DNA of 63,968 nt, the filler included, from Choristocarpus tenellus KU-1152 (Eukaryota; Protista; Phaeophyceae): NCBI GenBank assembly GCA_964200185.2. It is 7 parts of 7 records of this genome, joined end to end, with 100 filler letters (N's around TTAATTAATTAA, not from the genome) between each part and the next. Parts side by side here need not be neighbours in the genome. Positions count along the whole stretch, not along the records: positions 42,578 to 59,172 come from CAXNAD020000805.1; 6 more parts are not named here. One strand, 5' to 3'. The notes below the pieces were generated by a model, which was not told the origin of the DNA, searched no databases, and worked only from the letters and a program-made list of their open reading frames with translations. Below are positions 42,578 to 59,172 of the stretch, in pieces (within the stretch, counting starts at the first letter, position 1; each line of letters starts with the position of its first letter). A program made the position numbers and the translations under genes.

Positions 42578-44556
42578 AAGAGAGGCGGTAGGACCTCCAG
42601 CCTTCTATTTCATCACCCTAACCCTAGACTTGATGGGGTGTTGCAAAATATTCTAGTTTGATACCCATTCTGCAGGTGATTTCCCTTTGGATTTGGTCCA
42701 GGTAGGCAGATGGAAAAGGACGGTGCACCCACTCTTATATTTCACACGTACTGTCAAATGACCTGAAAATCACTACAGGGACACAAAGGCCCCAAATAGA
42801 CACCTGACCCCCCCACTAAGATATATGACCTAGAAATAGGGTGGATTGCTACATTCCAAAATGTTTTCAATTAATTTATAAAATGATGCTTCCGATGCTG
42901 AATTCATGTCAATGTTAACCCTTGTCTCACTTCTTCAAATTGCAAAACTGCACCACCCGGCAACAGGATGTGTAACCACCTCCCCATGTTATTTCTATTC
43001 AGGCAATTCTCATCCCAAGTTCCTCCAGGTTCCTCCTAATGATCTCAGCAACACCTACACCATCTTTCTGGTACAGTCAGTACCAGAGGTTTGCCACTGA
43101 GTCCAACCCGCACACACTCGTGGAGGACCTACTGTTGTCTTCTCCAGACAACAAATCCATAGGGACACATCCCACACCAAGTTTTGACAAGGGACAGGAT
43201 TCATTCTGTGTGTGTGGAGATACAATCGTTGGGAGGAGAGTATGTGGTGTTAAGTGTCATTGATGAAGAAAGACTTGTATACTCCATGGGTTACAAGGGT
43301 GAATGTGGTGATAAGTCCTTGCCCCGAGGGCCACGGTTGCACATGCTAGAGGAAGAGGTTGAGAAGGGCACCCAACTGCTACAAGAGAAGGAGAAGAGGG
43401 ACCGTGATACACTCAAAGCTCAATGCAAGGAGTGGCAGGAACGACATAGCCAGAAGGAGAATGGGAGGAGGACGAGGAGAACCAACATTGGAAGTTGTGC
43501 CCATGTTGGAGGAGACTACTCTTCTTCACAGTGCTGAGGCCACGAGACCCCACTTCTGGTTGAACAACAGTCAACGAGAGCCGTTTATTGCGGTTGTGGA
43601 CTCTTTTCTTTAGCCATCTCTTTATTGAGGTTCTTGTATTTTTATTGCGTTGGCCAATGAAATTTCCAGAAAACCCCTCATCCTTCTCCCTCATTTTTAT
43701 CCTTTCAAAAACAACACAGCAGATACATTGTAGCATGGTTGGTAATTCAGGAATGCTGAACACATGTTGGGTGTTATTACTGGCAAAGGCCAAACCAAAC
43801 GACAAAGCAAAAATGGAGAGCATCAAGCAGGTGGGTCCTGAGCTGCTACTCATGCGTCTTGGGTGCTTTCTACACATACTGCACTTGGCCATCCATGCAT
43901 GGTTGGAGAATTGTTCGTTTATGGACAAGATGGGAACGGGAAGTTGGGAAAAGTGGCCCTCTGATCACCTCGTGGCACTCCAGCTCTTCCTTAAGAGTCT
44001 TGGCAACCTTTGCTTGCTCAATCTCAATTGCAGGTAGAATAAGGTTTGGGTCAAAAGACTCAAGCTCCTTCCGAAGATTGTCAACCTTGATCTTCTCCCT
44101 TTGAGGTTATTTCTGGTCGTTTTCCTCCCTTTACTTTTGGAACTCCACCTTCAAACATTGCAATCTCTTCTTCAGGCACTGCTGACATCTCAGAGTGTTG
44201 ATGATAATTTTCAATACGAATATCAACCTCACGGTTCTTAGCAGATTAGTCTCTTCGTCTCTCATCTTCCTTATCAAACAATATAGTCACAGTAGCCTCT
44301 GAAGTGTTTTGCTCCTTCCTTGTCACAGTGGCCTCCATCATTGTGAAGGCTTGCTCAACTTTGCCCTCCACCTCTGCTTTCACTTTTTCAATATTCACTT
44401 CACTCACTGTACATAGTTTCTTTAGGTTATCTGACATCTGTTCATAAATGAATGAATTCTCCTGATTGTTGTGTGGGTGTGGGAAGTTTCACTTTTCCTA
44501 CTGTGATATAGAAAGAAGTGTGATCAGTGTGATCAGAAAAGTGCCTTCTGCTGTTC

Positions 44557-45874
44557 ATGTGTCTTAGTCTTCCATACACACCATTTTATTTTGGTGCACT
44601 TTACTATTGTGCTGTGACTATCATTCCCTACAAGAAGTTCTGGTTAAGAGACTATTTCAAAATGCGTGCTTCATCAGTTTTTGTGTATGATGACAATCTC
44701 CAAAATACCAAGTATGGATTTCAAATCTTGGACCTCTACACACACATCCTCCCATACGTTTTTGACAAAATGTCCACCCCAAAAAGTGTGATTCTCATAA
44801 ATTTTATTAAATCCGAAAGAGAGCAAAATGCAAAAAGGGATTCAATAAGTGGTGTTTTGCTACATTATTTCAAGTCCCAGATTGATAAATTGGGGAAAAA
44901 CAGGTATCATGTGAATAGCATGGTTCTTTGGTTCAACTTCACCACTGAGCACAAACTCATTCTGTCTAAACTGGTCCAAGCTGGGGATCCATGGAAGGCC
45001 CCACACTCGAGCATGGGACAAGATACGGGAGGAGTCCCTTCATATTTTCTATTTTCATGTTTGTGTGGGGGCATTGAGGGGAGACTTAATGTTCTCTTGA
45101 AGGGGTCAGAAGAGTTGGATGACACATTCACTCATAGGAGTGGGACCACAGAGAAGTTTGATCTGGAAGACCTCTACTCGAGATCTGGAGTAGTGGATTA
45201 CGCAAGAGAGTCTAAGTCGGAAGAAATGAAAAGACTGAGGACACTCGGAGAGGCAGGAAGTTTGAGGTAGAATATTCCACCATGATGAAGGCCAAGTCTG
45301 GACGGACGATGTCTCGGTGAATTAGTAATGATGAAGGGAAAGCTGGAGGTAAGGACAAGGGGGAAGGCAAATGCCACCAATTCAGGTACTGATGCCGACA
45401 GACTAAGTTCAGTCTCCTTTTCCCTATCAATGACAAGGAAGAAGCAGACTGTGCCCGTCCGCCTCTATAACCACAAGCCAGAGAGTGGTTGGAAACCCAG
45501 ATTTCAAGTCTCTTTGTTTTCTGAGAGTGGCGGAGGGGATGGAAGGAGGGAGGAGCTGGAACGAAAAGGAAGTTTCACCACGAGGAGGTGGAGCTCTAGA
45601 AGGAAACTATGCAGCAGGAGTCCAAGAGGAGCAAGGATCTATCTACAGGAGGATATGAATGAGGAGGGCGTTTTCCACCACCACCAACCAGCATGAGGAC
45701 ATGGTGAGGGAGAGGTTGGAGGAGAGGGGGAAGAGGGAGAGAAAGGGTGATTTGGACAGGATGGAGAGGGAGAGAAGGGACAAGTTGGACAGGGAACCGA
45801 AGTTGGATGAGAGGGTGGAAAGACAAAAGGTGAGAAGCGGGAAGGTGATTAGCATAAGACCACGGCAAACATGA
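44557..45874 (+). other. Intronless broken ORFs (237 aa plus charged tail), probably a retroelement gag relic
   Basis: Long, CpG-poor open frame with no splice pattern and no recognised domain. Confidence 0.25.
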
Positions 45875-46107
45875 TGTATGCCTTTATTGAGGGGGTGAGT
45901 AAGAAGCTGAGTTAAACTGAAGTGTTAACTGAAGTTTTGCACAGGTATGAGAGATTGATTTGTTGCGACCCCTTGGTTTGTGTTGAGAGTTTGAGGCATG
46001 TGTGTGTGTCTACAAGAAGCAAACAAAAACTTGTGGAACATAAAAAAAACTGAAAAAAATGGACATCTTCTCACTTCCCTGTCAAAATAAAATAAATTAT
46101 CACTTGC

Positions 46108-47193
46108 GAGTCAAACCATCTGAGAGGAGGCGGGTTGCATTGCAAGGATCCCGAGGAAGGGCAAAAAGAAGCAATTTTGTACAAGTCCAGAAATAGGTCG
46201 AATATCAATTCTGTGAACACTATTGTGCACATAAAGCATTGAAATAAAGCGTATTGCACAGGGGAAGAAAGATGGCTTAGAATGCACAAGGGCCCAAACT
46301 TGCCCGTATCTTGATTGATTTAGCTCTTGTGTGCATTTCCTGCTCATAAAGTACAAAACAAGACTAGGTACTGGTAGTCCACATAGATGTTCTACATCTT
46401 CATGGCACCACAAATTTGTTTGAGACTAGAGACAAAGCTCTTCCACTTTTGCATTATTTCTGAACAAATCATAGCAAAAAGATGTATATGGCCCTCCATT
46501 GTTGTGAAGGTAGTCGGTATGGAGTAAGAGGGATGAGTAAATTAAAAGTTGAGGATCAGGGTTGTGGTTTTGAATCAGAAACTGATGGAGAGTGTTCTAC
46601 AATGAGTCATGAATGTATCCTAAGGATCTGCCTTTTGACACAGTTTGTTGTCATAGGATAATGGTGTGGAGTTAGGTTAAGTGGATTAAAATTGTGAGTA
46701 AGCTGTAATAATCAAGTGAACATCTTGTGCTGTCGAATCTGCAGATATGGTAGACATTTTTTGTATGTTGTTGAGGCAGGGCCGTTGATGAAGTTCACAA
46801 TCTTCTCTATCAGTGAGTGTATAGGATTATTGCAATGGGTGATAAATGACATTCCAGAAGCCCAACGTGATATCTCATTTTCTGCTCTCGAGTGAGAACA
46901 GGAGTAACATACTAGTAATAAAATGTGAGGATGTTTGAGCCAAACCAATTGAGATGCGGCAAGTTTGGACCCTTTTACATTTTAAACCTTCCTTCTACCC
47001 CTGTCCAATACACTCTATTTCATTGCTTTATGTGCACAATAGTGCACACAGAATTGGTATTCGCTCTTTCCACGCACAAAGTGATACCACTATCCAGCAA
47101 AGACTCTGCAATTGCACAAAATGACAAAAAAATTTGCCCTTTCTTGAGATCCTTAAAATGAAACCCGTGCCTACCTCTCAGTTCGTTTGACTC
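46108..47193. mobile_element. 1.09-kb foldback/TIR element with diverged inverted arms of about 180-200 bp
   Basis: GAGTCAAACCATCTGAGAGG...CCTCTCAGTTCGTTTGACTC. The arms translate to near-identical peptides on opposite strands (PVQYALFQCFMCTIV / PVQYTLFHCFMCTIV). Confidence 0.75.
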
Positions 47194-48411
47194 TTTTTTT
47201 GTTTCATTATTTCTACCTTACATTATTGAGATGAAAGAATTAGGGGCCATACATTGCAAAGCACTCAGTGATGAGGGCTACACCCCAAAGTACTCCACCA
47301 TTTTGCCACCATACAGGCAGGTATGGATTCTGTTCAAGAGAGCCCTTATTGCACACACCTTGCCGATGGGTTGCAGGTGCAGGTTGAATTCTGCTTACCG
47401 CAAGGAACGCCAAACATGTTGCAAACCAGTAGTACAAGACCAGGTCATGTGTTTCATTCACGAGTTGAGGCTCGTAACTGTTGAAACCTGGGATTTAATG
47501 AATCGTTCTCTTCTACGGTGGCAGGTTGGTTGTGATGAAGGGGTGCACAGTGCAATGAAGCACCAGTGAATTCATGCTGATGAATCTGATGACATGATGT
47601 GCAGAGTCTGAGGTTATTTGGTAAGATGTGGGTATTCCTTGAGACGCTCAAAGAAAGAAGTACATGCTCTGAGTAGAAGGTTGGCACCTTGTGAAAAAGG
47701 ATTTATCAAGGTGTTATTTTTACTGGGAATATATTGCATCTTGGTGTGTAGGGGTACACTTAGTACAGAGTGAACTGCAAGTGTAAGTAGGGGCAAAGAC
47801 AACCAAAGAAAAAATAATAATCAAATGTGAGAGGGAACTGATGATTGTGATGTGAAAATAAAAAACTAAGAAACAAACTTGAATCAATATCTAGAACAAT
47901 TCATATGGCACATACTATGCTTGTATGTTTCACAGATGTCGACTGTTCCATGGTTCCTATCCACTATGATTTTCTAACAATAATTGATGATGCTATGATG
48001 AGGTACTAATGATGTAAACGTGACTAACGACCAGTTCCAATGTGCGAATCAGCAGTAAGTATGAACTGGTAATACTGTATCGTATCAAATATACAGAAGA
48101 GATGAGTAGTCTATGTTTTAACATTTGTCAAAATGGAACCGACTCCCCTCCCAACCTATAAAGTGTTTTAACTCTTGAACCAAACTCGTATGTGCCTTTG
48201 TAAAGGGTGCTTCGTCTGTCCATATCTTCTTACCAACTAAAACCTCCATAACAATATCCAATGAGGGCAACTGTGTTCGAAAACAAACGTCCTTCACGTT
48301 GACATATCCCCACTGCTAGTCCCTAACTCCTTCAAGGAACGATATGTGTGTCGCCAAAGTTTAATCGGAGAGGAGCCATTTTCAGCATTTAGAAGAATTT
48401 CGGTTCTGTGA

Positions 48412-51400
48412 ATGGGTTTGCTTGGAATAATCTGGGGTCGGATCAAGCACGTATTCGGAGTGAAGCAAGAGAGGACAAATATGGACAAAAATACAGAATG
48501 GAGGAAGGGCAGGCGAAGGACCCTAAAGAGAATAAAAACTCATATTAACTCGTTCGAGAGGTCTCTAATTTTTACCGCTAAGAGGAAAGAGTTCCTGGAC
48601 AAGGCGCACAAGAAGCGAGTGTTGCTTGCACGATTTCGCACACTTCAGAATCTGAGGAGAAAAGGGAAATTCGTGAAGTCGGCAGTACGAGAACTTTACC
48701 CCGAGGTACCCCATCGCTTTTTTTTACGTGCATGAAACTGACCTCCTCGATGACCACTGGTTCATACTGCCGCCACCCAAACCGTCAATTGGGGTTGCGG
48801 ACCTATGGAAACATGATATCAAAGAAAAAAAATGATCGTACACCACAGGAGTACAGTTCTAGAGGCCCAAGATCGTGTGCTTGGCAACAACAAGTCCCTG
48901 CGTCTGAGTGAGATGCGACTTTATACATAAATGCATGTCTGGAGATGCACTTGCAGGGCATGGTAGGTCTTTTCAAGGCTCCCATCGTAGAGTTTGACGG
49001 CCTATCTTGCATATTGTTCTCTGAGATATTATATATATATATCTCCATGTAAAAAAAGAGCAACTCTATCCATGGACCAAGGCTAGGCACAATTCTCATT
49101 CTATTCCACTTGTGGAAAATCGTGGTGTAGGAAAAGCCAATTCAAGAATATCTACTGTTTCAAATAAAATAGATTGGACAAATTGCGTCAGGGTTGTCAG
49201 CTGACACCACATGTCAGCCTATCTCGACTCCATGAAGAAGCACTGTGCCATGTAGTGAGTGACCAGAGAGTGTATCCAACCTTTCCAGGTACAAGGGGCT
49301 ATCTTTGACCTTCTCTTTGATGAGTTTGAATGCTATGGAGCAGAGGACAACTGTTTGGCCATGTTCACCCTTGCCACATTCCTGGTGAGCCTCTTGTGTG
49401 GTCTTAACATGTATTCATAACAAAGCAAAAATGGGAGATGAGAGTTGTAAGGTAGAGATCTAAAACAAATGCTTAAAGACGAGGCATTGCTGATTTTCTT
49501 GGATTCCATCTTGTGAAGAGGTGATGGTGACCAGTGAAACGAGATTGGAGCCACCTTTTTTTATCTCTAGGATCAGGTGCCCCACTCCTTGTTGGTCAAT
49601 GCCATATTGAATAGGTGGTTTGCCCACTTCAAAAATATTGTCTATATTTCAATTTGCATCTTAGTCTATGATCCATTGAAATATGTTCTTAGGATGAATA
49701 GTGAAAGAGATAGATTTCAGACTGTCAAATTATCCTTCGAGCATAGACCATTTGTGATTGATATTTCCCAAGAGATGTTTCTATAACTGATCGTGGCGGT
49801 TATTGTCCGCAGTGCTTACTATTCCATATGTGAACAATGAATTCACACCCTGGGCATAGGTTTCCAATAGATCTATCTAGTTGGGTCAAAATACATATTT
49901 TTGCTCCATTTCTTTGTTGATGACCTATAATTATAACCTCTGATCTATGCTTAGTATTTCTATTCTGCAACTTACATTCAACTCCAGACTATCCAAAATT
50001 GTACCCTCTCCTGCTTGGAAGAAAGGCTCTTCATCCACTCATTGTGAAGGACATTGAAAAATGACGCCCCCCTTGTTCAAATTGGCACCAGACTTTCATC
50101 TACATTATTTTATGGGTTCAATATCTTCCCAATCAATAAACTTCAAATGGAAATAAGCAACTACCACGAGAGCAACTCATACTCCTGCAATCAGACCTTG
50201 GTATTTCCTGTCAAAATGTGGTTGTCTTGGTTCAAATCCTAGGACTACCCAAGTGTGTTTTGTGCAAGTATGTGAAATTTTTGAAGTCTTTGATTCATCT
50301 CCACCCCCATTATGTACTCAGTTGCAAATGGAAGAAGACTATGGATGATGATAATCAGCATTTTGGGGGGGAAGGTTTTTTTTCACAAGGGTAGTTCAAG
50401 TGAAAGTTGATGTCGTTGAAGTTCACGATACCTCTAAATATTTAAAAACTGAACTTAATACTGTATTCTCATTCTGAGCCTTTGTTGCCTACAGACCACA
50501 ACCGAAACGGCAAGCTTTTGCGATGAGGTCGACTTGGGTTTCTCTGTTTTTGATGTCGATGGTAGTGGAGATATCAGCAGGGCAGAGTTCGGGATGCTTG
50601 TGAAGGCTTCAACTACAGCAAGCAATTTCAAATTCCGGAATAACCTTGACACTGCTAGAGGCAGGTACGTCTGATGGATCTGGTCTTAGGCTTCAGACAA
50701 AATTGTCCCTTGATGGGAAATTTGAAATAATCAGCAGGGGTCCAGTCATGATTCATACTCCACCATCCAAGTGCTACAGTAATCAACATCCTATCATACG
50801 TTACCTGAATGTACTATTTGACATTGTAGATTGATTGCACTATTTTACATTGTAGATTGTACTATTGCGTTTTGAATAACCATGTATGCAGGAAAGTGTA
50901 AGCTAGAAACCTGGACTACTTTCAGGCACCAATACATCTCCTCACTTGTCAGGGAACACTTTTTGAAACTGTGCAAGCATGAAACTGCACCAGTGGTTGT
51001 GGAGGCATTTGATGCTGTCAAGAGATTCAAGGGAACAAAAAATAATTGCACAGATGAAGCACTCAACATATTTGAAACATATTTCAAGGATGGGGCCCAT
51101 AAACAGGTGTGCAAACCTTCAGGTCAATCCACACAATTTTGAGCAATCCACAATCTTACTTTTTTGGGAAATAGTTGAGTTTCCAAGCGTAAAAGAGATA
51201 TATAATTATATGTTTATCTTGTGAGACTTAAAAATTTCTTGTCCAAGGAACTGTGGAGATATTGACACATTTTCAACCCTGATAACATCACTCCACATAA
51301 GTAGTTCCACAGGGTAACTTCCAACCGCTACAGAGAGCTGCAAAGTAACATACGTAGGCATTCAATGGTACTCTTGGCCACCCTTGCAGCACTAAAGATT

Positions 51401-54089
51401 CCCGTTCCTCAGAGAGCTCAAGGCTTGTGTCAGTCTATTTGCTGATGGTGCTAGTATTTTTTTACTTTTTTTCTTGGGTTTCCAATGCTTAAGAGGCTAC
51501 TCTTTTCTTGAGTAATAAATATTCTAGCTGGGACAATTGATATAATATTCCTTCTCTTTATTTGAGGCATCTAGTCCTTACCCAGTGCTTGGTTAGCCTT
51601 TGTAATCTTTTCATCATTGGCGCTATCATATCCTGCTGCTGCTAAGAGGATGGCATACACCATTTATATGTGGATGTGGACCTACTCTATTTCTTGAGGT
51701 CCCATTCCCATTTATTTGTTTCTGTGTGCCTTTAACATTCTGTAGCTTCCAAGTCAGAATTACTCATTGCCTCTGGAAGAGGCTCAACATTGCTTACTCC
51801 TTTCTTGACTATTGCTTCCTGCTGTGGCCTAACAATGTACCCACTGAACCCAGTATAAATTGAGCAGTATCTAGCCCCTGTTGATGATGGCAGTGCACTC
51901 ACAGATGTACCAATGTATGGGAAGAGAAAAATTTGTCCCTCACATTGTCTCACAACTTGTTTATGAAGGATAGATCTGCTTTGCAGTCTTTGTCCCCTTG
52001 GCAGTTAGTAGACCACTCTACTGCCTAGAAGCCGATGTTCAGTCATTCATTGACTGGTTTTCACAAAACACATATTACCATACTGTTCAACTTGTCTGTG
52101 TCTACCATTTCCTCATTGATTATGACAGGATTGCCATTCACATCCATCCTGGCAACTTGATCATTGTTATTATTATTTCTTATTTTTTTATTATTAGTAA
52201 TCTTATTATACCATCTTCACTTTAGATTGGGCACTATCCCAACCCATGGTCAGAGGTACTACACACTGCACTACCTCTCACACTAAATTTACTCTGAGTG
52301 TTGCACTATGACTAATGGTGATGTCTCCATTCCTTGCTTCTTGTGTGTTGGGTTCAGCCATCCCACAGCTCATTGCTCAGCCTTCTGCCTCAAATCTTTA
52401 ACTGGACCCACCTAAGTGCTGTTCCACAATTAAGCCTTACAATTTTCTTCTTGGTCAGGTGTTTTTATGGTATATACAACAGATAGGAGGATAGTACAGG
52501 TGTACAATCTATAGTGCTTGTCACATGGACTAGGTAATTGAAACCAAATTTCCCTGAAAAGAAGTACGGTGAAAGTGAGGTTAGAACGTACAAATTCATA
52601 CAGGGAACTGCTTCCATAACCACTCAACCACAAGAACACTCATGACATAGATTGTTAGGGTCTGTGCCAAAAGCATTCCCCCAAAACATTGTAGAGTTAG
52701 TTGCCTGGAGATTTCATCTCCAACCATCTAACATTTCCTTGAGTTATCTCAAGTGTGCTGAGGTCATTCATATTGAAATGAGACTTCAACTTGAAATTAA
52801 TGAAATAAAGCCTCTTGGGAAATGTCTAGACCTGTGGGAATCACCTGCCAGAGATGATATCTATGGTTGATGTTTCGTCAAAATATAAAATGTCTCCCCC
52901 AGAGTGGATGACTTGCACCCCATTCCTCATTCAATTCTTGAAAATCTGAAAACAGGTCCTTGCCAGAAAGGTAAGATCTTCCCCTATGGCGCAACCCTCT
53001 TGAAATGAACTGATTTTCATAATAGTCTCGCCAATATATGGATAGGCCAAAAAATCAATATTGTGAATCCCCTTATCTTGATGATATCAACTGGAAATTC
53101 AAGAGGTGTATCCCCCACCTCTTGGTTTTTAGTCCTTGAGATGATAGGATTGATAGGATTGATAGTGATCTTGGAAACACTTCTACTTGGCAAAGTTTGT
53201 CCTCTGTTGCACTCCTGTGAGCTTCAGAACAATTATCGGTGTTGCAATCATTTGTTTCAAAATATTTTGACCATAGACCTCAACAGGATGAATTGATACA
53301 TAACCCATCTCCATGTGTTTGTATTTCCATCAGCTGGAAGGCTTGTCCACTGATGCGAGTCTGAAGATGGGGGACGAACTTCAACAGGCAGTCGCTGGTA
53401 AAATGCCAATACAGTGGAATTTTTTTGACAAGGCCCTAGTAGAGGTGTGTAAAACGTTTCATAATTCGTGATCGCCCAAGAGAATTATCATTGAGGTTGT
53501 AAACCTGATCGAATTTACCTAGAAACTTGTCACAAGTGAGTAAATTGATGAAAAGTTGTCCTGCACTTGAACATGTTGTGCCGCCAGCATGACCTTGATT
53601 AACTATTGGTCATTATTTCCTGTCTTTGTGCAATAATCAATAATCAATAATCAATAATCAATGCGAAACTTTTAAATTTGAATCCTCTTGTACCATGCGC
53701 TTGTCAAGGTTTTGGGACATCTGGAGAAGGAATGTTTTGTTCGTTTTAAGGAAAACTCGCTTGAATTTCTTAACAAGACAAACCAATTGTTTGATATGGT
53801 GGATGCAGATGGAAGGTGAGAAAAAAACCATGCCAAATTATATGAGGATAATTCAATAAATAAGTGCAACCTTTTTTCCTTGACAGTTAACCATTTATGG
53901 ACTTCCATTTGCTTCCTTCCCTTGCCAACCTGTGTGTGTGTATACTGATTTGCCGATCCTTCTTTTCACAGTGGAGCGATTGTGCTGGAGGAATATATGG
54001 CATGGGCAAAAGAAAATCAGGACTGTATTGAGGGGATGTTTGACTTTCCACACACATCAGAGACAAGAGTTCAACCGTTTGACCGATAG
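48412..54089 (+). CDS. EF-hand (NCS/calcineurin-B-like) protein with inserted RGS domain, 349 aa; exons 48412-48705, 49289-49384, 50495-50664, 50953-51106, 53334-53444, 53709-53815, 53972-54089
   Basis: Seven phase-consistent GT-AG exons sum to 1050 nt. EF loops DVDGSGDISRAE and DADGSGAIVLEE. Between them: FRNNLDTARGREHFLKLCKHE..AVKRFK..EALNIFETYFKDGAHKQ..FFDKALVEVLGHLEKECFVRFKEN, which follows the RGS helix pattern. Confidence 0.85.
51700..53250 (+). mobile_element. Gypsy-like LTR retrotransposon relic in intron 4 of the EF-hand/RGS gene
   Basis: Zinc knuckle CFLCVGFSHPTAHC (CX2CX4HX4C) at 52335-52376; RT motif PRVDDL at 52898. Boundaries approximate. Confidence 0.6.
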
Positions 54090-54759
54090 TGTGAAAGTGC
54101 ATGCATCGTTTGTGGGGGATGGTGAAAGCAACCCAGAAAAAGTTCAGAACAAGGCAGGGGACAAACTTGCCATGCTCTTTTAATTAACACTCTACATGCA
54201 TTCTTCAAAGTGGAAGGAAATAAGAGTGTTAATGACGTTAATGACATTTATGAACAAGCCTTCACAGCCTGGCATCACCCAGCTCGAGTACATTAGATAT
54301 CCATAGTTCAGATATGAATGTAAGTGTGTCAGATTGGCAAGACGTTTCTGGCAGGGTAGGCGGTTCCTTCAACAGTGTTGTGTGTCTGTGTTTACTTCTG
54401 AGCGACATTTTGAGACTAGAGAAACATTTTGACATGTGTCAGTACATACGTACTGCAGATGTGCATACATACATAATACAGACTACCTTTTTCAAGCCAG
54501 CAAGCCAGCAATTAACAGAATTGATATGGGAGCAATGTATGTGTACATGCTGGTTTCATTCTTGTGTTCCAAATTCCACCCTAATTGAAGGGAGGATTTT
54601 GTTGAGGCTGCACAATAGGGTTGGGAATGTGGATATGAGTGGGAGGGCGGAGGTCAGCAAAAAAATGCAGGTTCAACTAGTGCAAATCACAAGTTTCTGC
54701 TCACCCATGCGAGGGAGCAGAGTGGGAATCAGAACTATGCCAGTTTTGTCCATTACAAA

Positions 54760-54890
54760 ATGAGGTACAAGAGCCCTGTGGGTAGCTTAAAAGGATTGGT
54801 CCTTGTAGTGTGCCCTGCACATTACATATGTGGACCACAGAAAGCTGATCCCCTGACCAAAGGCCTCCTGCTCACTCACAACTGACACCT
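54760..54890 (+). mobile_element. Copia RT/RNase H relic
   Basis: YKSPVGSL (YRSxVGSL-like) followed by QKADPLTKGL (QxADxxTKxL-like). Confidence 0.55.
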
Positions 54891-55618
54891 TGATAACAAG
54901 CAGGGAGACCATTCACTAGGGCATGCACTTGTCAAGAAAGAGCCTTGATCGGGTCCTGTTCACCTAGAATACTGGGTGCAATTCGCGTAGAGGAGATTAT
55001 GATGCTCTGTTCCACAACCACTTAAGTTCAGTGTACTGTACTGTAATTAAGTAATTTAAAGCGATGAACATCTCATAAAACCAGTATGTACAATAAAATG
55101 GAAGTATCCAACTATCATTGTATCTTGATTCTAGGGTTAAATTATTCTCCGCTTTCAGGGGGGCTCAGTGGAGGGTGTCAAATTGACATATGCTGACAAA
55201 ATATTCTTTGAGGTTCTCTGCAACACTTAGGGACCTTGAGATTTTATTCTTCACCCTCACCATAAATACTGTCAGCTGATGCCGAAAGGTCCCTGATGAC
55301 TAACTGTTCTCAGACAACAAAAAGAGTTCTGTAACACACATGAAAAAAAAGGTTGAAATCAGGAGGGTTATGCTGTCTGCTCACAGTTTCACACATCATC
55401 TGTTGAAGAGACTAATGATGGTTGTCAGGTCTTGCATGTGTGCTTGTGTCAAACACATGCACAATCCATGATGTGTAGCCAATTAACTGAATCTTGGACC
55501 AATTCTTACCAGTTGCATCTGATCACACACTACCAGCCCTTGTTGTAGTGCATACCATACCATACCGTGTTTTTTCCAAAAATTGTTTTAGCGTGCCGTA
55601 TTATATAGTTGTTAAAAA

Positions 55619-55773
55619 TAGTTCAATTGATATAAATCATTCTGGGATAGCCTTAATGGAAATTTTATTTGAACCAGATATAAGATCTCCTTATGAGGCT
55701 GGAGAATATGTGCAAAAGTTGCATAGCTTGTTATATAAGTTATATTAGATCTTGTGAGGGTAATATGGATCAG
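55619..55773 (+). pseudogene. gatB: Bacterial-type gatB fragment (short copy)
   Basis: [38 protein letters not shown], then frameshifted [11 protein letters not shown]. Confidence 0.85.
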
Positions 55774-56775
55774 CAATCTTCTGCTTATCATTTTAGTTAC
55801 AGGTCTGGTATGGTGCCTAGATCTGTTACAATTCAGCAACTTGATTAGGGGGGGTTGAAGACACACGTCATGATCTCTCTAATGACATACATCAGTGCAG
55901 ACACGTATCAGTGCAAGCAAGTACGTTAATAGATGAGATGTCTGTACAGTATTTTTATGGTAAATCCAATGGTTGCAAAGTCTTCCTCATCAACCTTCAT
56001 TGATGGCCTCCAATTCCATTTACCTATTTACTATAAGATCTTCCCCAAAAGTGTTAAATTTCCTTTGGGATCGCACATGATTGCTATTCTGGGCCATAAA
56101 CGTCATTTATGGCACCATCTCCATTGACATTGCTTCTACAGGAATGTTGGTGGCGTAACATCCCCAATAGTTGGTGACCTCTTGCACACTCTTTCTCCTT
56201 ACCTAACACGAAAAGGTGCCTGTTGACTCAATGCAATAAAGACCAAAGTTGCAAGTTGCGATGTTGTCACGATTTCCAGAAAAATCATTGGCTCTTTGAG
56301 TCGTGTCTTAATGAGTTTTTTTTGTGAGTTATAGACGCGAGGGACTTTTTAGAAATTGAAGGGGAAAAAAAAACGTGGTAAAGCCAATTAGTATTCCACG
56401 GTTCGTTCCTACACCAATAACAGTCACTAATTCCATAAAATATTTATTTGTCCTTCCAATTTCTCGTCTTCTTTCACATAGATATATTTCACAATAGATA
56501 CCTTACATAGAAACCAGGAGAGATCGTAAGACACAACGGTCTTTGGTGAAGGACAGATTGGAATCCTCAAGATTGCAAGTGCTAGTCCGCAGTGCGGGTA
56601 ACTGGCACACAGTTGATATTTCCACATCATGGATGACCTTACCCTACATGCATGTATCAAATCATTTTTTCCCTACGCGTTCCTTGAACAAATGACCATA
56701 TTACTGAAATGATATGTTAACCATTACAATAAGAATGTTTTTACCAAGGGCTGTTAAAAATTCATTGATGGAGCG

Positions 56776-57888
56776 CTGACCAATCTCAACATCAAACAAT
56801 CTTGCCTGATCAACTGCACCACTGCTTTCAATAAGTTCAACTTGTCTTATCACTTCATATTCAATGACTTAATATTTTTTATAGAATTTAAATTCTTGAT
56901 CTCACATCTAGTATCAACATTATCACCAGGGCGTCTAATCGAAACATTAACGTCACAACGCATCATCGATCCCTGATCCATATTCTAACGTAACAAGCTA
57001 CGCAACTTTTTTACGTATTGTCCAGCCTCATAAGGAGATCTTGTATCTGGTTCAGATAAAATTTCCATTAAGGCAATCCCAGAACGATTTAAATCAATTA
57101 AGCTATATACTCATGGTTGATCATGAATACTTCTACCATCTTGTTCTAAATGAACGACTAATTCTTATATTTTTTTCTGTTCATCTTCAGTTTGAATATT
57201 TAAATAACTATTCTGTGCAATTGGTATATAAAATTGTGAAATTTGGTAAGCTCGAGGTTGTGCAAAAAGAGCTGTTCGAAGAGAGTTTTTGCTTTATGTG
57301 GTATGAATGAATTTATTAGCAGAGTGAGCAACATCCCTCGAGGTGGGCACCATCCCTCGAGGTGCGCACCATCCCTCGAGGTAGGGGGGTGCTCTGCCTT
57401 GTTATCTATTGCGCACGTCAGCAGACAAGTCAGAACATGTCTGTTTCAGTAGCACTACGTCACTCGTTCTGCACCACTGGTACTATGTCAGTCATCCTAC
57501 CTACTACATCAGCATCTTACATTAAGCAGCAATAACAAATTAACCTGTCGAGATTCGAACATATTACTCTAAGCGTACGGAAACAAGTGATTGACAATTA
57601 ATCCACTCAGTCAACATTTATGTTACGTAATACTGGTTACCAAACACAGAAGAACCTATAGACTACCAGCCTATATTGCACAGAGATATATCAGAAAAAA
57701 AACAATTCTTACAAAGATAGATAACTTACTCATTTCTACATTAAGTATCGATAAATCCTAGGCACCGCAGCGTCGATCAATGAAAATTTTATATTAGGTG
57801 TTGCACTGAATTCAGACGCAGTAGTTTTCTGAAGTGAATCCCAGTTTAGTATTGATATTATTATTTACCTGTTAAGCCGACTTGCATT
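56776..57888 (-). pseudogene. gatB: Rickettsiaceae-like gatB pseudogene (N-terminal half), interrupted by a solo LTR
   Basis: Ordered motifs: GLTGK**Y..IH, SEFSATPNIKFSLIDAAVP, KNCFFSDI[LTR][90 protein letters not shown]-rich, intronless, with stops and frameshifts. Confidence 0.9.
57259..57682 (-). mobile_element. Copia solo LTR (424 bp)
   Basis: TGTGCAA...TTGCACA ends; flanks GAGGT/GAGAT (4/5 TSD); reverse complement of the LTR at 58235-58607. Confidence 0.9.
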
Positions 57889-58234
57889 TGTGCAATATAG
57901 GCTGGTAGTTTGTAGGTTCTTATCTGTTTGGTAACCAGTATTATGTAACAGAAATGTTGACCGAGTGGATTAATTGTCAATCACTTGTTTCCGTACGCTT
58001 AGATCAATAGGTTGGAATCTTGATGGGGTGATTTCTTACTGCTGCGTGACTGCGTTGCTGTAAGTGGCTGACGCAGGACGACTGACGCAGCTACGACTGA
58101 CACAAAACGACTGACATAGTACCAGTTACGCAGAACGACTGACGTAGTGCGACTGACACAGACACGTTCTGACGTGTCTGCTGACGTGCGCAATAGATAA
58201 CGAGGCAGAGCACCCCCCCACCATCGAGGGATAG
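57889..58234 (+). mobile_element. 3'-truncated LTR of the same copia family
   Basis: Starts TGTGCAATATAGGCTGG; colinear with the next LTR up to CGAGGGATAG. Confidence 0.88.
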
Positions 58235-59172
58235 TGTGCAATATAGGCTGGTAGTCTATAGGTTCTTATATGTTTGGTAACCAGTATTATGTAATAGAAA
58301 TATTGACAGTGGACCAATTGTCAGTCACTTGATTCCGTATGCTTAGAGTAATAGGTTCGAATCTCGATAGGTTGATTTGATATTGCTGCTTACTGTAAGT
58401 GGCTGACGTAGGCCGACTGAGGTAGTGCTAGTAACACAGAACGAGTGACGTAGTGCGACTGACACAGACACGTTCTGACGTGTCTGCTTACGTGCGTAAG
58501 AGATATCGAGGCAGAGCAACCCCCACCTCGAGGGATAGTGCTCACTCCGCGAATAAATTAATTCATACCACATAAAACAAAAATTCTATTTGAACAGCTC
58601 TTGCGCAGGTTATGAGCCTCACAAGTATGGAAGCGGACGTACGTAAGCTGCCACTATGGAGTGGTGCGCGTGGGCATACAAGGGAGAAGTGGGCAGAATG
58701 GCGGATGGCGCTGGTGAGCTATGCGGGCGGCAAGGGATTATATGTACCGCATCCTCCAACCAGCATACCACATCCCCGCACCTCCTATGGCTGATACATT
58801 GTTTGGGGAACGCAGCGCGTACGAGGAGTACGTCAAGCATCGCTAGTCTTATGGTTCCTGCTGGGCAAAGCCACGAGGGGGGCTGCAGCGATAGTGGTCA
58901 GCACCCACGAGAATAACGGCAGCCCCGACGGGAGGGCAGCCTGGCTCGAGTTGGAGCAGATCTATGGAGGAATGCTGTGGTCCAGCGGCCCATGCAGCTC
59001 ATAGCTCTCGAGATGAAGCTGAGCGACATGTGCTGCTCGTCAGTGGAGGACGCTGCCGACTTCGTCATCTGTCTCGATACGTCTGGACAGAGTACGAGCA
59101 GCTGGAGGCGACCAAGGAGTACCACACCAAGAAGGGGGGGGGGCTCTGATCATCGCCATCAGGAACAGCATG
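58235..59172 (+). mobile_element. Ty1/copia element 5' end: LTR 58235-58607, PBS 58608-58618, frameshifted gag from 58612/58627 to the gap
   Basis: TG..CA LTR directly followed by GGTTATGAGCC (copia-type half-tRNAiMet PBS). Gag-like LPLWSG..KWAEWRMALVSYAGGKGL and AAWLELEQIYG. Confidence 0.85.

Follow-up and report, generated by a model that had tools for sequence, protein, structure and literature searches.

The window analysed here, a stretch of 63,968 nucleotides of Choristocarpus tenellus KU-1152 DNA, includes a 16.6-kb piece (positions 42,578 to 59,172) in which a broken gene resembling bacterial gatB is found next to LTR sequences, and the question raised by this locus is whether a rickettsial bacterium has left DNA in the genome of its algal host. 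Our analysis points to a non-functional gatB fragment that was derived from a Megaira-like bacterium of the family Rickettsiaceae and now resides in the host genome, most likely in the nucleus, and we put the probability of this reading at about 0.85.

A broken gatB gene

The gatB gene codes for subunit B of the GatCAB tRNA-dependent amidotransferase. Read on the minus strand, nucleotides 57888-57683 followed by 57258 to ~56767 correspond to residues 1 to ~268 of a 481-residue GatB (Table 1), and the GatB motifs TGK-stop-stop-Y (57872-57855), YQISQFYIPIAQN, SIHDQ and NSIKNI follow each other in protein order. Three separate stop-free pieces, which are colinear, scored above the curated Pfam cut-off of 23.4 bits for GatB_N (PF02934), the GatB/GatE catalytic domain, covering profile positions 82-112, 134-173 and 181-220 at 24.5, 44.2 and 43.7 bits, respectively (E-values of 1.9e-5, 1.8e-11 and 2.6e-11). 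A sequence-only reading of this stretch had described a decayed gatB with its motifs in N-terminal order; all of the motifs quoted there are located on the minus strand, the GatB_N domain is matched three times, and the proposed bounds, 56776-57258 and 57683-57888, agree with ours within ~10 nt.

Table 1. Features of the gatB locus and of the adjacent retroelement sequences (positions along the window)
Feature	Position	Strand	Evidence or remark
gatB N-terminal segment, ~residues 1-95	57683..57888	-	nhmmer E 8.9e-9; several frameshifts
gatB main segment, ~residues 96-268	56767..57258	-	Pfam GatB_N, three matches; nhmmer E 7.8e-104
Inverted gatB fragment, 167 bp, residues 146-199	55613..55779	+	Pfam E 3.8e-8; nhmmer E 4.6e-28
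Possible, very degraded gatB continuation, ~residues 335-423	56170..56445, perhaps to 55976	-	unconfirmed
Solo LTR splitting gatB, 424 bp, TGTGCA...TGCACA	57259..57682	-	alignment with two other copies
3'-truncated LTR copy adjoining the gatB start codon	57889..58234	+	repeat comparison
Full LTR, with the retroelement interior next to it	58235..58607	+	repeat comparison
LTR element interior, 57% G+C, cut by the end of the piece	58608..59172	+	composition

A frameshift-aware alignment of residues 74-268 (57745..56767) with P0016, a Rickettsiaceae GatB of 481 aa, yielded 131 identities in 180 positions, with four frameshifts (near 57712, 57182, 57153 and 56867), in-frame stop codons at 57113-57111 and 56987-56985, and a six-codon gap, the main segment having lost about six codons beside 56987. 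The first ~70 residues are more decayed, and their alignment score was 94, as compared to 29 ± 4.5 for shuffled DNA; residues 1-28 fit two frames and were not used in the tree. One N-terminal reading begins with a possible ATG at 57887-57885 and gives M-Q-V-G-L-T-G-K-stop-stop-Y, in which the stops (57863-57858) occupy the W-E site of the relatives, which read ...TG(K/E)WEY. This ATG is situated 1 nt from the LTR that starts at 57889, leaving no space for a presequence, in line with the earlier remark that no transit peptide is visible before the adjacent LTR. Over its whole length, the gatB reading contains at least four frameshifts, at least five stop codons and one small deletion, and no intact frame with a C-terminal GatB_Yqey domain (PF02637) was found in it. 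The gatB of the window is confirmed as a genuine, broken and non-functional piece of a gene.

The AT-richness which had been noticed previously is also evident: the fragment has 33% G+C, as compared to 33-35% in Rickettsiaceae gatB genes and 42% in the whole piece. In a comparison with L005 and L001, two rickettsial relatives, the change on the branch of the fragment amounted to 0.106, 0.121 and 0.192 at codon positions 1, 2 and 3, respectively, versus 0.090, 0.019 and 0.192 on the branch of the intact L005, i.e. second-position change is sixfold higher in the fragment, while third-position change is equal. Such a pattern fits a loss of constraint lasting for ~0.1 substitutions per site. Among the changes private to the fragment, 25 were AT-to-GC and 16 GC-to-AT, that is, directed towards the composition of the host, and its terminal branch in the quick IQ-TREE protein tree measures 0.50 versus 0.11 for its sister. 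The G+C content and the excess of second-position change fit a bacterial origin with neutral decay afterwards.

An inverted second copy and the missing parts of the operon

A second gatB fragment is found in the opposite orientation ~1.2 kb away from the main one, to which it is 90% identical over 116 nt; the inverted arms formed by the two (repeat I2) are 116 nt long, 90% complementary and 1.26 kb apart. This copy has kept ~22 nt (...S-C-E-G-N-M-D-Q) that were deleted from the main gatB, indicating that the duplication took place after arrival in the host and that each copy has decayed separately.

In all four of the relatives examined, gatC and gatA directly precede gatB, whereas no such neighbours adjoin it in the window: when the gatC and gatA of L001 and L005, along with the genes next to them, were searched against the piece by tblastn, nothing was obtained below an E-value of 0.01, and none of the other Rickettsiaceae genes from four related loci matched it. 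The upstream side, where gatA and gatC would be expected, is masked by the LTR element and the contig end, beginning 1 nt before the gatB ATG. On the other side, similarity does not extend past residue ~268 of the 481, and neither blastn nor tblastn nor nhmmer detected a 3' half. A stricter frameshift alignment placed GatB residues 335-423 on 56445-56170, with 28 of 85 residues identical and three frameshifts; its score of 58, as compared to ~34 ± 5 in controls, was reached by none of 26 other host windows, one of 150 shuffled proteins and none of 150 shuffled DNAs, and nhmmer gave no DNA-level signal at 56170-56445. This doubtful remnant may represent the remaining 3' half of gatB, much more strongly decayed than the rest of the insert, or may be due to chance. 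A more lenient frameshift alignment of the 3' half, with ~20 frame changes, was judged to be overfitted and was set aside. What is clearly retained here is only the 5' ~55% of gatB. The inverted copy at 55613-55779, the truncation at ~268 of 481 residues and the lack of gatA and gatC, as well as the LTR target duplication described below, were absent from the sequence-only reading.

Relationship to rickettsial GatB

With one genome per bacterial species searched, the sole close match to the fragment was a Rickettsiaceae MAG (L001, 88% identity over 40 aa), and the next two were Alphaproteobacteria MAGs at 66-68%. A protein search seeded with the GatB of L001 collected 120 Rickettsiaceae-type proteins, with Ca. 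Megaira (Megaera) venefica in one of the clusters. Another 150 GatB sequences, more distantly related and including the mitochondrial ones of Acrasis kona, Capitella teleta and Lymnaea stagnalis, came from 1.84 billion representatives that were searched in addition. Identity of the fragment, calculated over 203 aligned positions, is 57-72% (median 66%) for 132 Rickettsiaceae-type GatB proteins, with 70% for Ca. Megaira venefica, versus 37-59% for 116 other representatives, the eukaryotic mitochondrial GatB being at 40-50%.

Phylogenetic analysis (proteins shorter than 400 aa, redundant rows and L004, an actinobacterial protein with a poor match, were excluded) placed the fragment with P0083 and P0016/P0026 in all three trees, namely FastTree, a quick IQ-TREE run with 150 rows and a careful one with 61 rows. 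The resulting four-row clade, composed of the fragment and three Rickettsiaceae-type GatB proteins, received an SH-aLRT value of 98 in the quick tree and ultrafast bootstrap/SH-aLRT values of 91/98 in the careful one, and is nested within a 32-row Rickettsiaceae-type clade (99/93), which also contains Ca. Megaira venefica as well as MAGs listed at NCBI as "Rickettsiaceae bacterium"; the previously suggested Rickettsiaceae-like origin is in agreement with this placement. Branch support near the clade of Megaira venefica is as low as 45/0. The mitochondrial GatB proteins of Acrasis, Capitella and Lymnaea fall elsewhere, and constraining the fragment to group with six eukaryote-type rows lowered the log-likelihood by 43.8 units, with a p-AU of 0.046, which is only just significant, although the other lines of evidence all point the same way. 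A grouping with eukaryotic organelle-targeted GatB, which had been named beforehand as an outcome that would refute the rickettsial origin, was not recovered.

The closest intact counterparts, the GatB proteins of Ca. Megaira venefica and Rickettsiaceae MAGs (P0124, P0083, P0016 and P0001), show 70-72% aa identity to the fragment over the 203 positions and resemble it in N-terminal pattern and base composition; they are, however, intact at 481-483 residues and belong to a gatC-gatA-gatB operon, while the copy in the window is truncated, broken and alone. The nearest intact genes form ordinary gatCAB operons on bacterial contigs. At the DNA level, the nearest relative compared (L005) is only 76% identical over 504 nt, indicating either an old event or a donor from a lineage that has yet to be sampled. 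These comparisons support a donor of Rickettsiaceae type, which would be Megaira-like, in a tree set which has no named Rickettsia, Torix-group or Orientia sequences.

LTR insertions in and beside gatB

The two segments of gatB are separated by a solo LTR, which has TG..CA termini and multiple copies in the genome, and is flanked by a 5-bp target duplication, gaggt (57254-57258) and gagat (57683-57687), with four of the five bases matching. When the LTR and one of the 5-mers are removed, the gatB frame becomes continuous (...S-D-I-P-R-A-Y-Q-I-S-Q...), indicating that a host retroelement was integrated into the bacterial DNA. Such continuity is to be expected from a target duplication made by an integrase. 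The k-mer depth of the LTR reaches hundreds to thousands in public runs, as compared to ~22 for the flanks, which identifies it as a member of a high-copy family. The element interior (58608-59172) had no Pfam match; its nearest ESM Atlas clusters, Retrotran_gag_3 and DUF4219, were at 0.80-0.81, under the trust level, and the resemblance to a copia gag should be taken only as a lead.

Some further details of the LTR sequences may be noted. At 57889-58607, a 3'-truncated LTR directly adjoins a full one belonging to the same family, after which the interior begins, an arrangement that is tandem or nested rather than a simple single insertion. The segments 57526-57682 and 57889-58045 form inverted LTR arms of 157 nt with 89% complementarity, the 206-nt N-terminal gatB segment being the loop between them, and a long hairpin would be possible if the region were transcribed. 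Short tandem repeats occur in the LTRs at 57324-57382, 58068-58175 and 58414-58481; they include a 19-nt unit, which is present three times in the solo LTR and once in the other copies, and 14/28-nt units of the CTGACG type. Copies of the LTR consequently vary in length (424 vs 373 bp).

Continuity with host DNA

Read support was sought in Logan contigs, not in raw reads, and the stretch is present in three runs, all from a single study. In run X1, a 5075-nt contig with a depth of 22.3 matches 54000-57311 with no differences, passing through the flank, the second gatB copy, further flank and gatB and reaching 52 nt into the solo LTR, and a 300-nt contig (57657-57955, depth 29) spans the N-terminal gatB segment together with its junction to the LTR on either side. 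In the second sample, X2, contigs covering 56672-56840 and 56970-57311 also show no differences, and their depth equals that of their neighbours. The gatB sequence is continuous with host DNA at host copy number, all junctions being bridged by contigs from the two samples. Support for its joining to host DNA is good, and at the same time not fully independent, as X1 and X2 belong to one study and one of them may be the source of the assembly itself.

A Pfam search of 20 of the longer ORFs and of the element interior revealed no ORF with a credible domain and no recognisable host gene in the 16.6-kb piece, which also lacks any tRNA or Rfam family, and exact look-ups of three ORFs yielded no record. 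In being poor in genes and rich in repeats, the DNA around gatB differs from a bacterial genome and has the usual character of intergenic DNA in eukaryotes. The host flank contains an unrelated inverted repeat (46199-46304 and 46958-47063; 106 nt, 86% complementary, 653 nt apart), which may be a small foldback or MITE-like element. In a third run, X3, the segment 54000-54600 has a depth of ~106 next to unique sequence at 0-4, while depth is flat in X1 and X2; a repeat or shared element of high abundance in the X3 sample alone is suggested by this contrast.

Origin of the insert

The identity of gatB, its Rickettsiaceae-type affinity, its lesions, the LTR with its target duplication and the contiguity with single-copy flanks are directly established, and from them we infer the way of entry, the order of events and the absence of function. 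DNA freed from an intracellular bacterium would have been joined to a host chromosome, and a 167-bp internal piece of gatB would have been duplicated and inverted at a distance of ~1.2 kb. Both gatB copies would have drifted neutrally, acquiring stops, frameshifts and small deletions and shifting to the base composition of the host, and a high-copy LTR family would have inserted twice, once into gatB, where the insertion later collapsed to a solo LTR, and once 1 nt upstream of the start codon. A nuclear location is most likely in view of the retroelement integration, the target duplication being the main argument for such a location. The proposal that rickettsial DNA was left in the host genome finds its backing in the disabled gene, the LTR with its target duplication and the contigs of single-copy depth across the junctions. 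The fragment would now be functionless, serving as a historical marker of association with a rickettsial symbiont, whether through past or present infection.

Rickettsia-like pseudogene inserts are documented in plant mitogenomes (PMC10027690), and the piece might likewise be organellar (mitochondrial) DNA with rickettsial inserts, as in the fern Haplopteris ensiformis; its G+C content of ~42%, the lack of long ORFs and the lack of a recognised host nuclear gene would be compatible with such an origin. However, the 16.6 kb yielded neither a mitochondrial gene nor any tRNA, rRNA or intron, and the contig breaks in a retroelement with a depth in the thousands. Insertion mediated by an integrase occurs in the nucleus, and the solo LTR, which is complete and framed by its 5-bp target duplication, sits exactly within the gatB frame and further argues against a mitochondrial piece, which we regard as improbable. 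An assembly chimera or contamination, in which reads from a living symbiont were joined to host repeats, might be suspected from the shortness of the contig, from its ends in repeats and from the occurrence in public runs of close relatives with an intact gatCAB operon. Against it stand the many stops and frameshifts, the absence of gatA and gatC, which accompany gatB in four of four relatives, the framing of the LTR by a target duplication, and the k-mer contigs from two samples, which bridge all junctions with no mismatch and with the same depth as the flanks; its probability is accordingly very low.

An origin from the organelle-targeted GatB of the host itself (PET112-type), by processing or decay of a copy, could be envisaged inasmuch as eukaryotic mitochondrial GatB is related to that of alphaproteobacteria and the AU test is marginal (p 0.046). 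Identity is nevertheless 40-50% to eukaryotic versus mostly 66-72% to Rickettsiaceae-type GatB, the eukaryotic constraint costs 43.8 log-likelihood units, the N-terminus lacks a presequence and is patterned as in Rickettsiaceae (M...TGKWEY), and the 33% G+C is that of Rickettsiaceae genes, so that this origin is extremely improbable. The inverted repeats I1 and I2 also call to mind a locus in use by the host, with hairpin or small RNAs from the inverted gatB or LTR arms directed against the retroelement or the symbiont; but the stretch was found in no RNA run, the decay looks neutral, and the layout is that expected from two chance TE insertions and one duplication, making such use scarcely credible. 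In a bolder version of the integrated-fragment reading, which we consider highly improbable as a whole, a Megaira-like bacterium infected a host lineage that has no known symbiont of this kind, the fragment is perhaps the edge of a larger insert, with gatA and gatC on the far side of the LTR element and the 3' half, in decayed form, at 56445-55976, and, more speculatively, the inverted gatB and LTR arms might give rise to hairpin RNA entering a small-RNA pathway, in the way known from integrated viral elements.

Comparison with other transfers

The gatB of the window is a further instance of a documented kind of event, with a tidy record in the form of a target duplication, a solo LTR and an inverted duplicate. 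In Volvox carteri, Rickettsiaceae genes were reported in 2015 from the nuclear genome (~9 kb with four genes; PMC4324946), and, as in our case, this is Rickettsiaceae DNA in the nuclear genome of a eukaryote; Volvox strains without the symbiont carry the DNA, which was read as a trace of an earlier infection (PMC4324946). In C. tenellus, by contrast, a single gene, gatB, is seen to only ~55% of its length; it is accompanied by a partial duplicate in inverted orientation and by inserted LTRs, and the host DNA has ~42% G+C. Nuclear inserts of Wolbachia are common in insects and filarial nematodes (PMC4558871, PMC2882956, PMC12693587), and they too are fragments of a Rickettsiales endosymbiont in host chromosomes, mostly pseudogenised, and are used as "ghosts" of past symbionts; the donor in that case belongs to Anaplasmataceae rather than Rickettsiaceae, and the Wolbachia inserts are often far larger. 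Degenerated rickettsial coding sequences with continuous coverage of the junctions were described in host DNA of Haplopteris ensiformis in 2023 (PMC10027690), where the top similarity is often to Caedimonas varicaedens and some inserts are closest to a Rickettsiaceae isolate; those inserts, however, reside in mitochondrial DNA, while retroelement integration points to the nucleus in the present case, with a donor of Rickettsiaceae type.

Although no new mechanism or gene function is revealed by the gatB fragment, integrated symbiont DNA constitutes a lasting record of who lived inside whom. The fragment implies that a Megaira-type bacterium was present in this host lineage ~0.1 neutral substitutions per site ago, and offers a PCR-testable marker for tracing the association across related species. 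It also warns annotators that rickettsial matches in this assembly are not all contamination. As for the nearest intact relative, P0083, it comes from a 7.7-kb gatCAB contig in another, very large NCBI assembly, GCA_024449895.1, whose accession number is next to that of a stonefly assembly (GCA_024449915.1, PMC12130441), and this contig probably represents symbiont or prey DNA within a eukaryote assembly.
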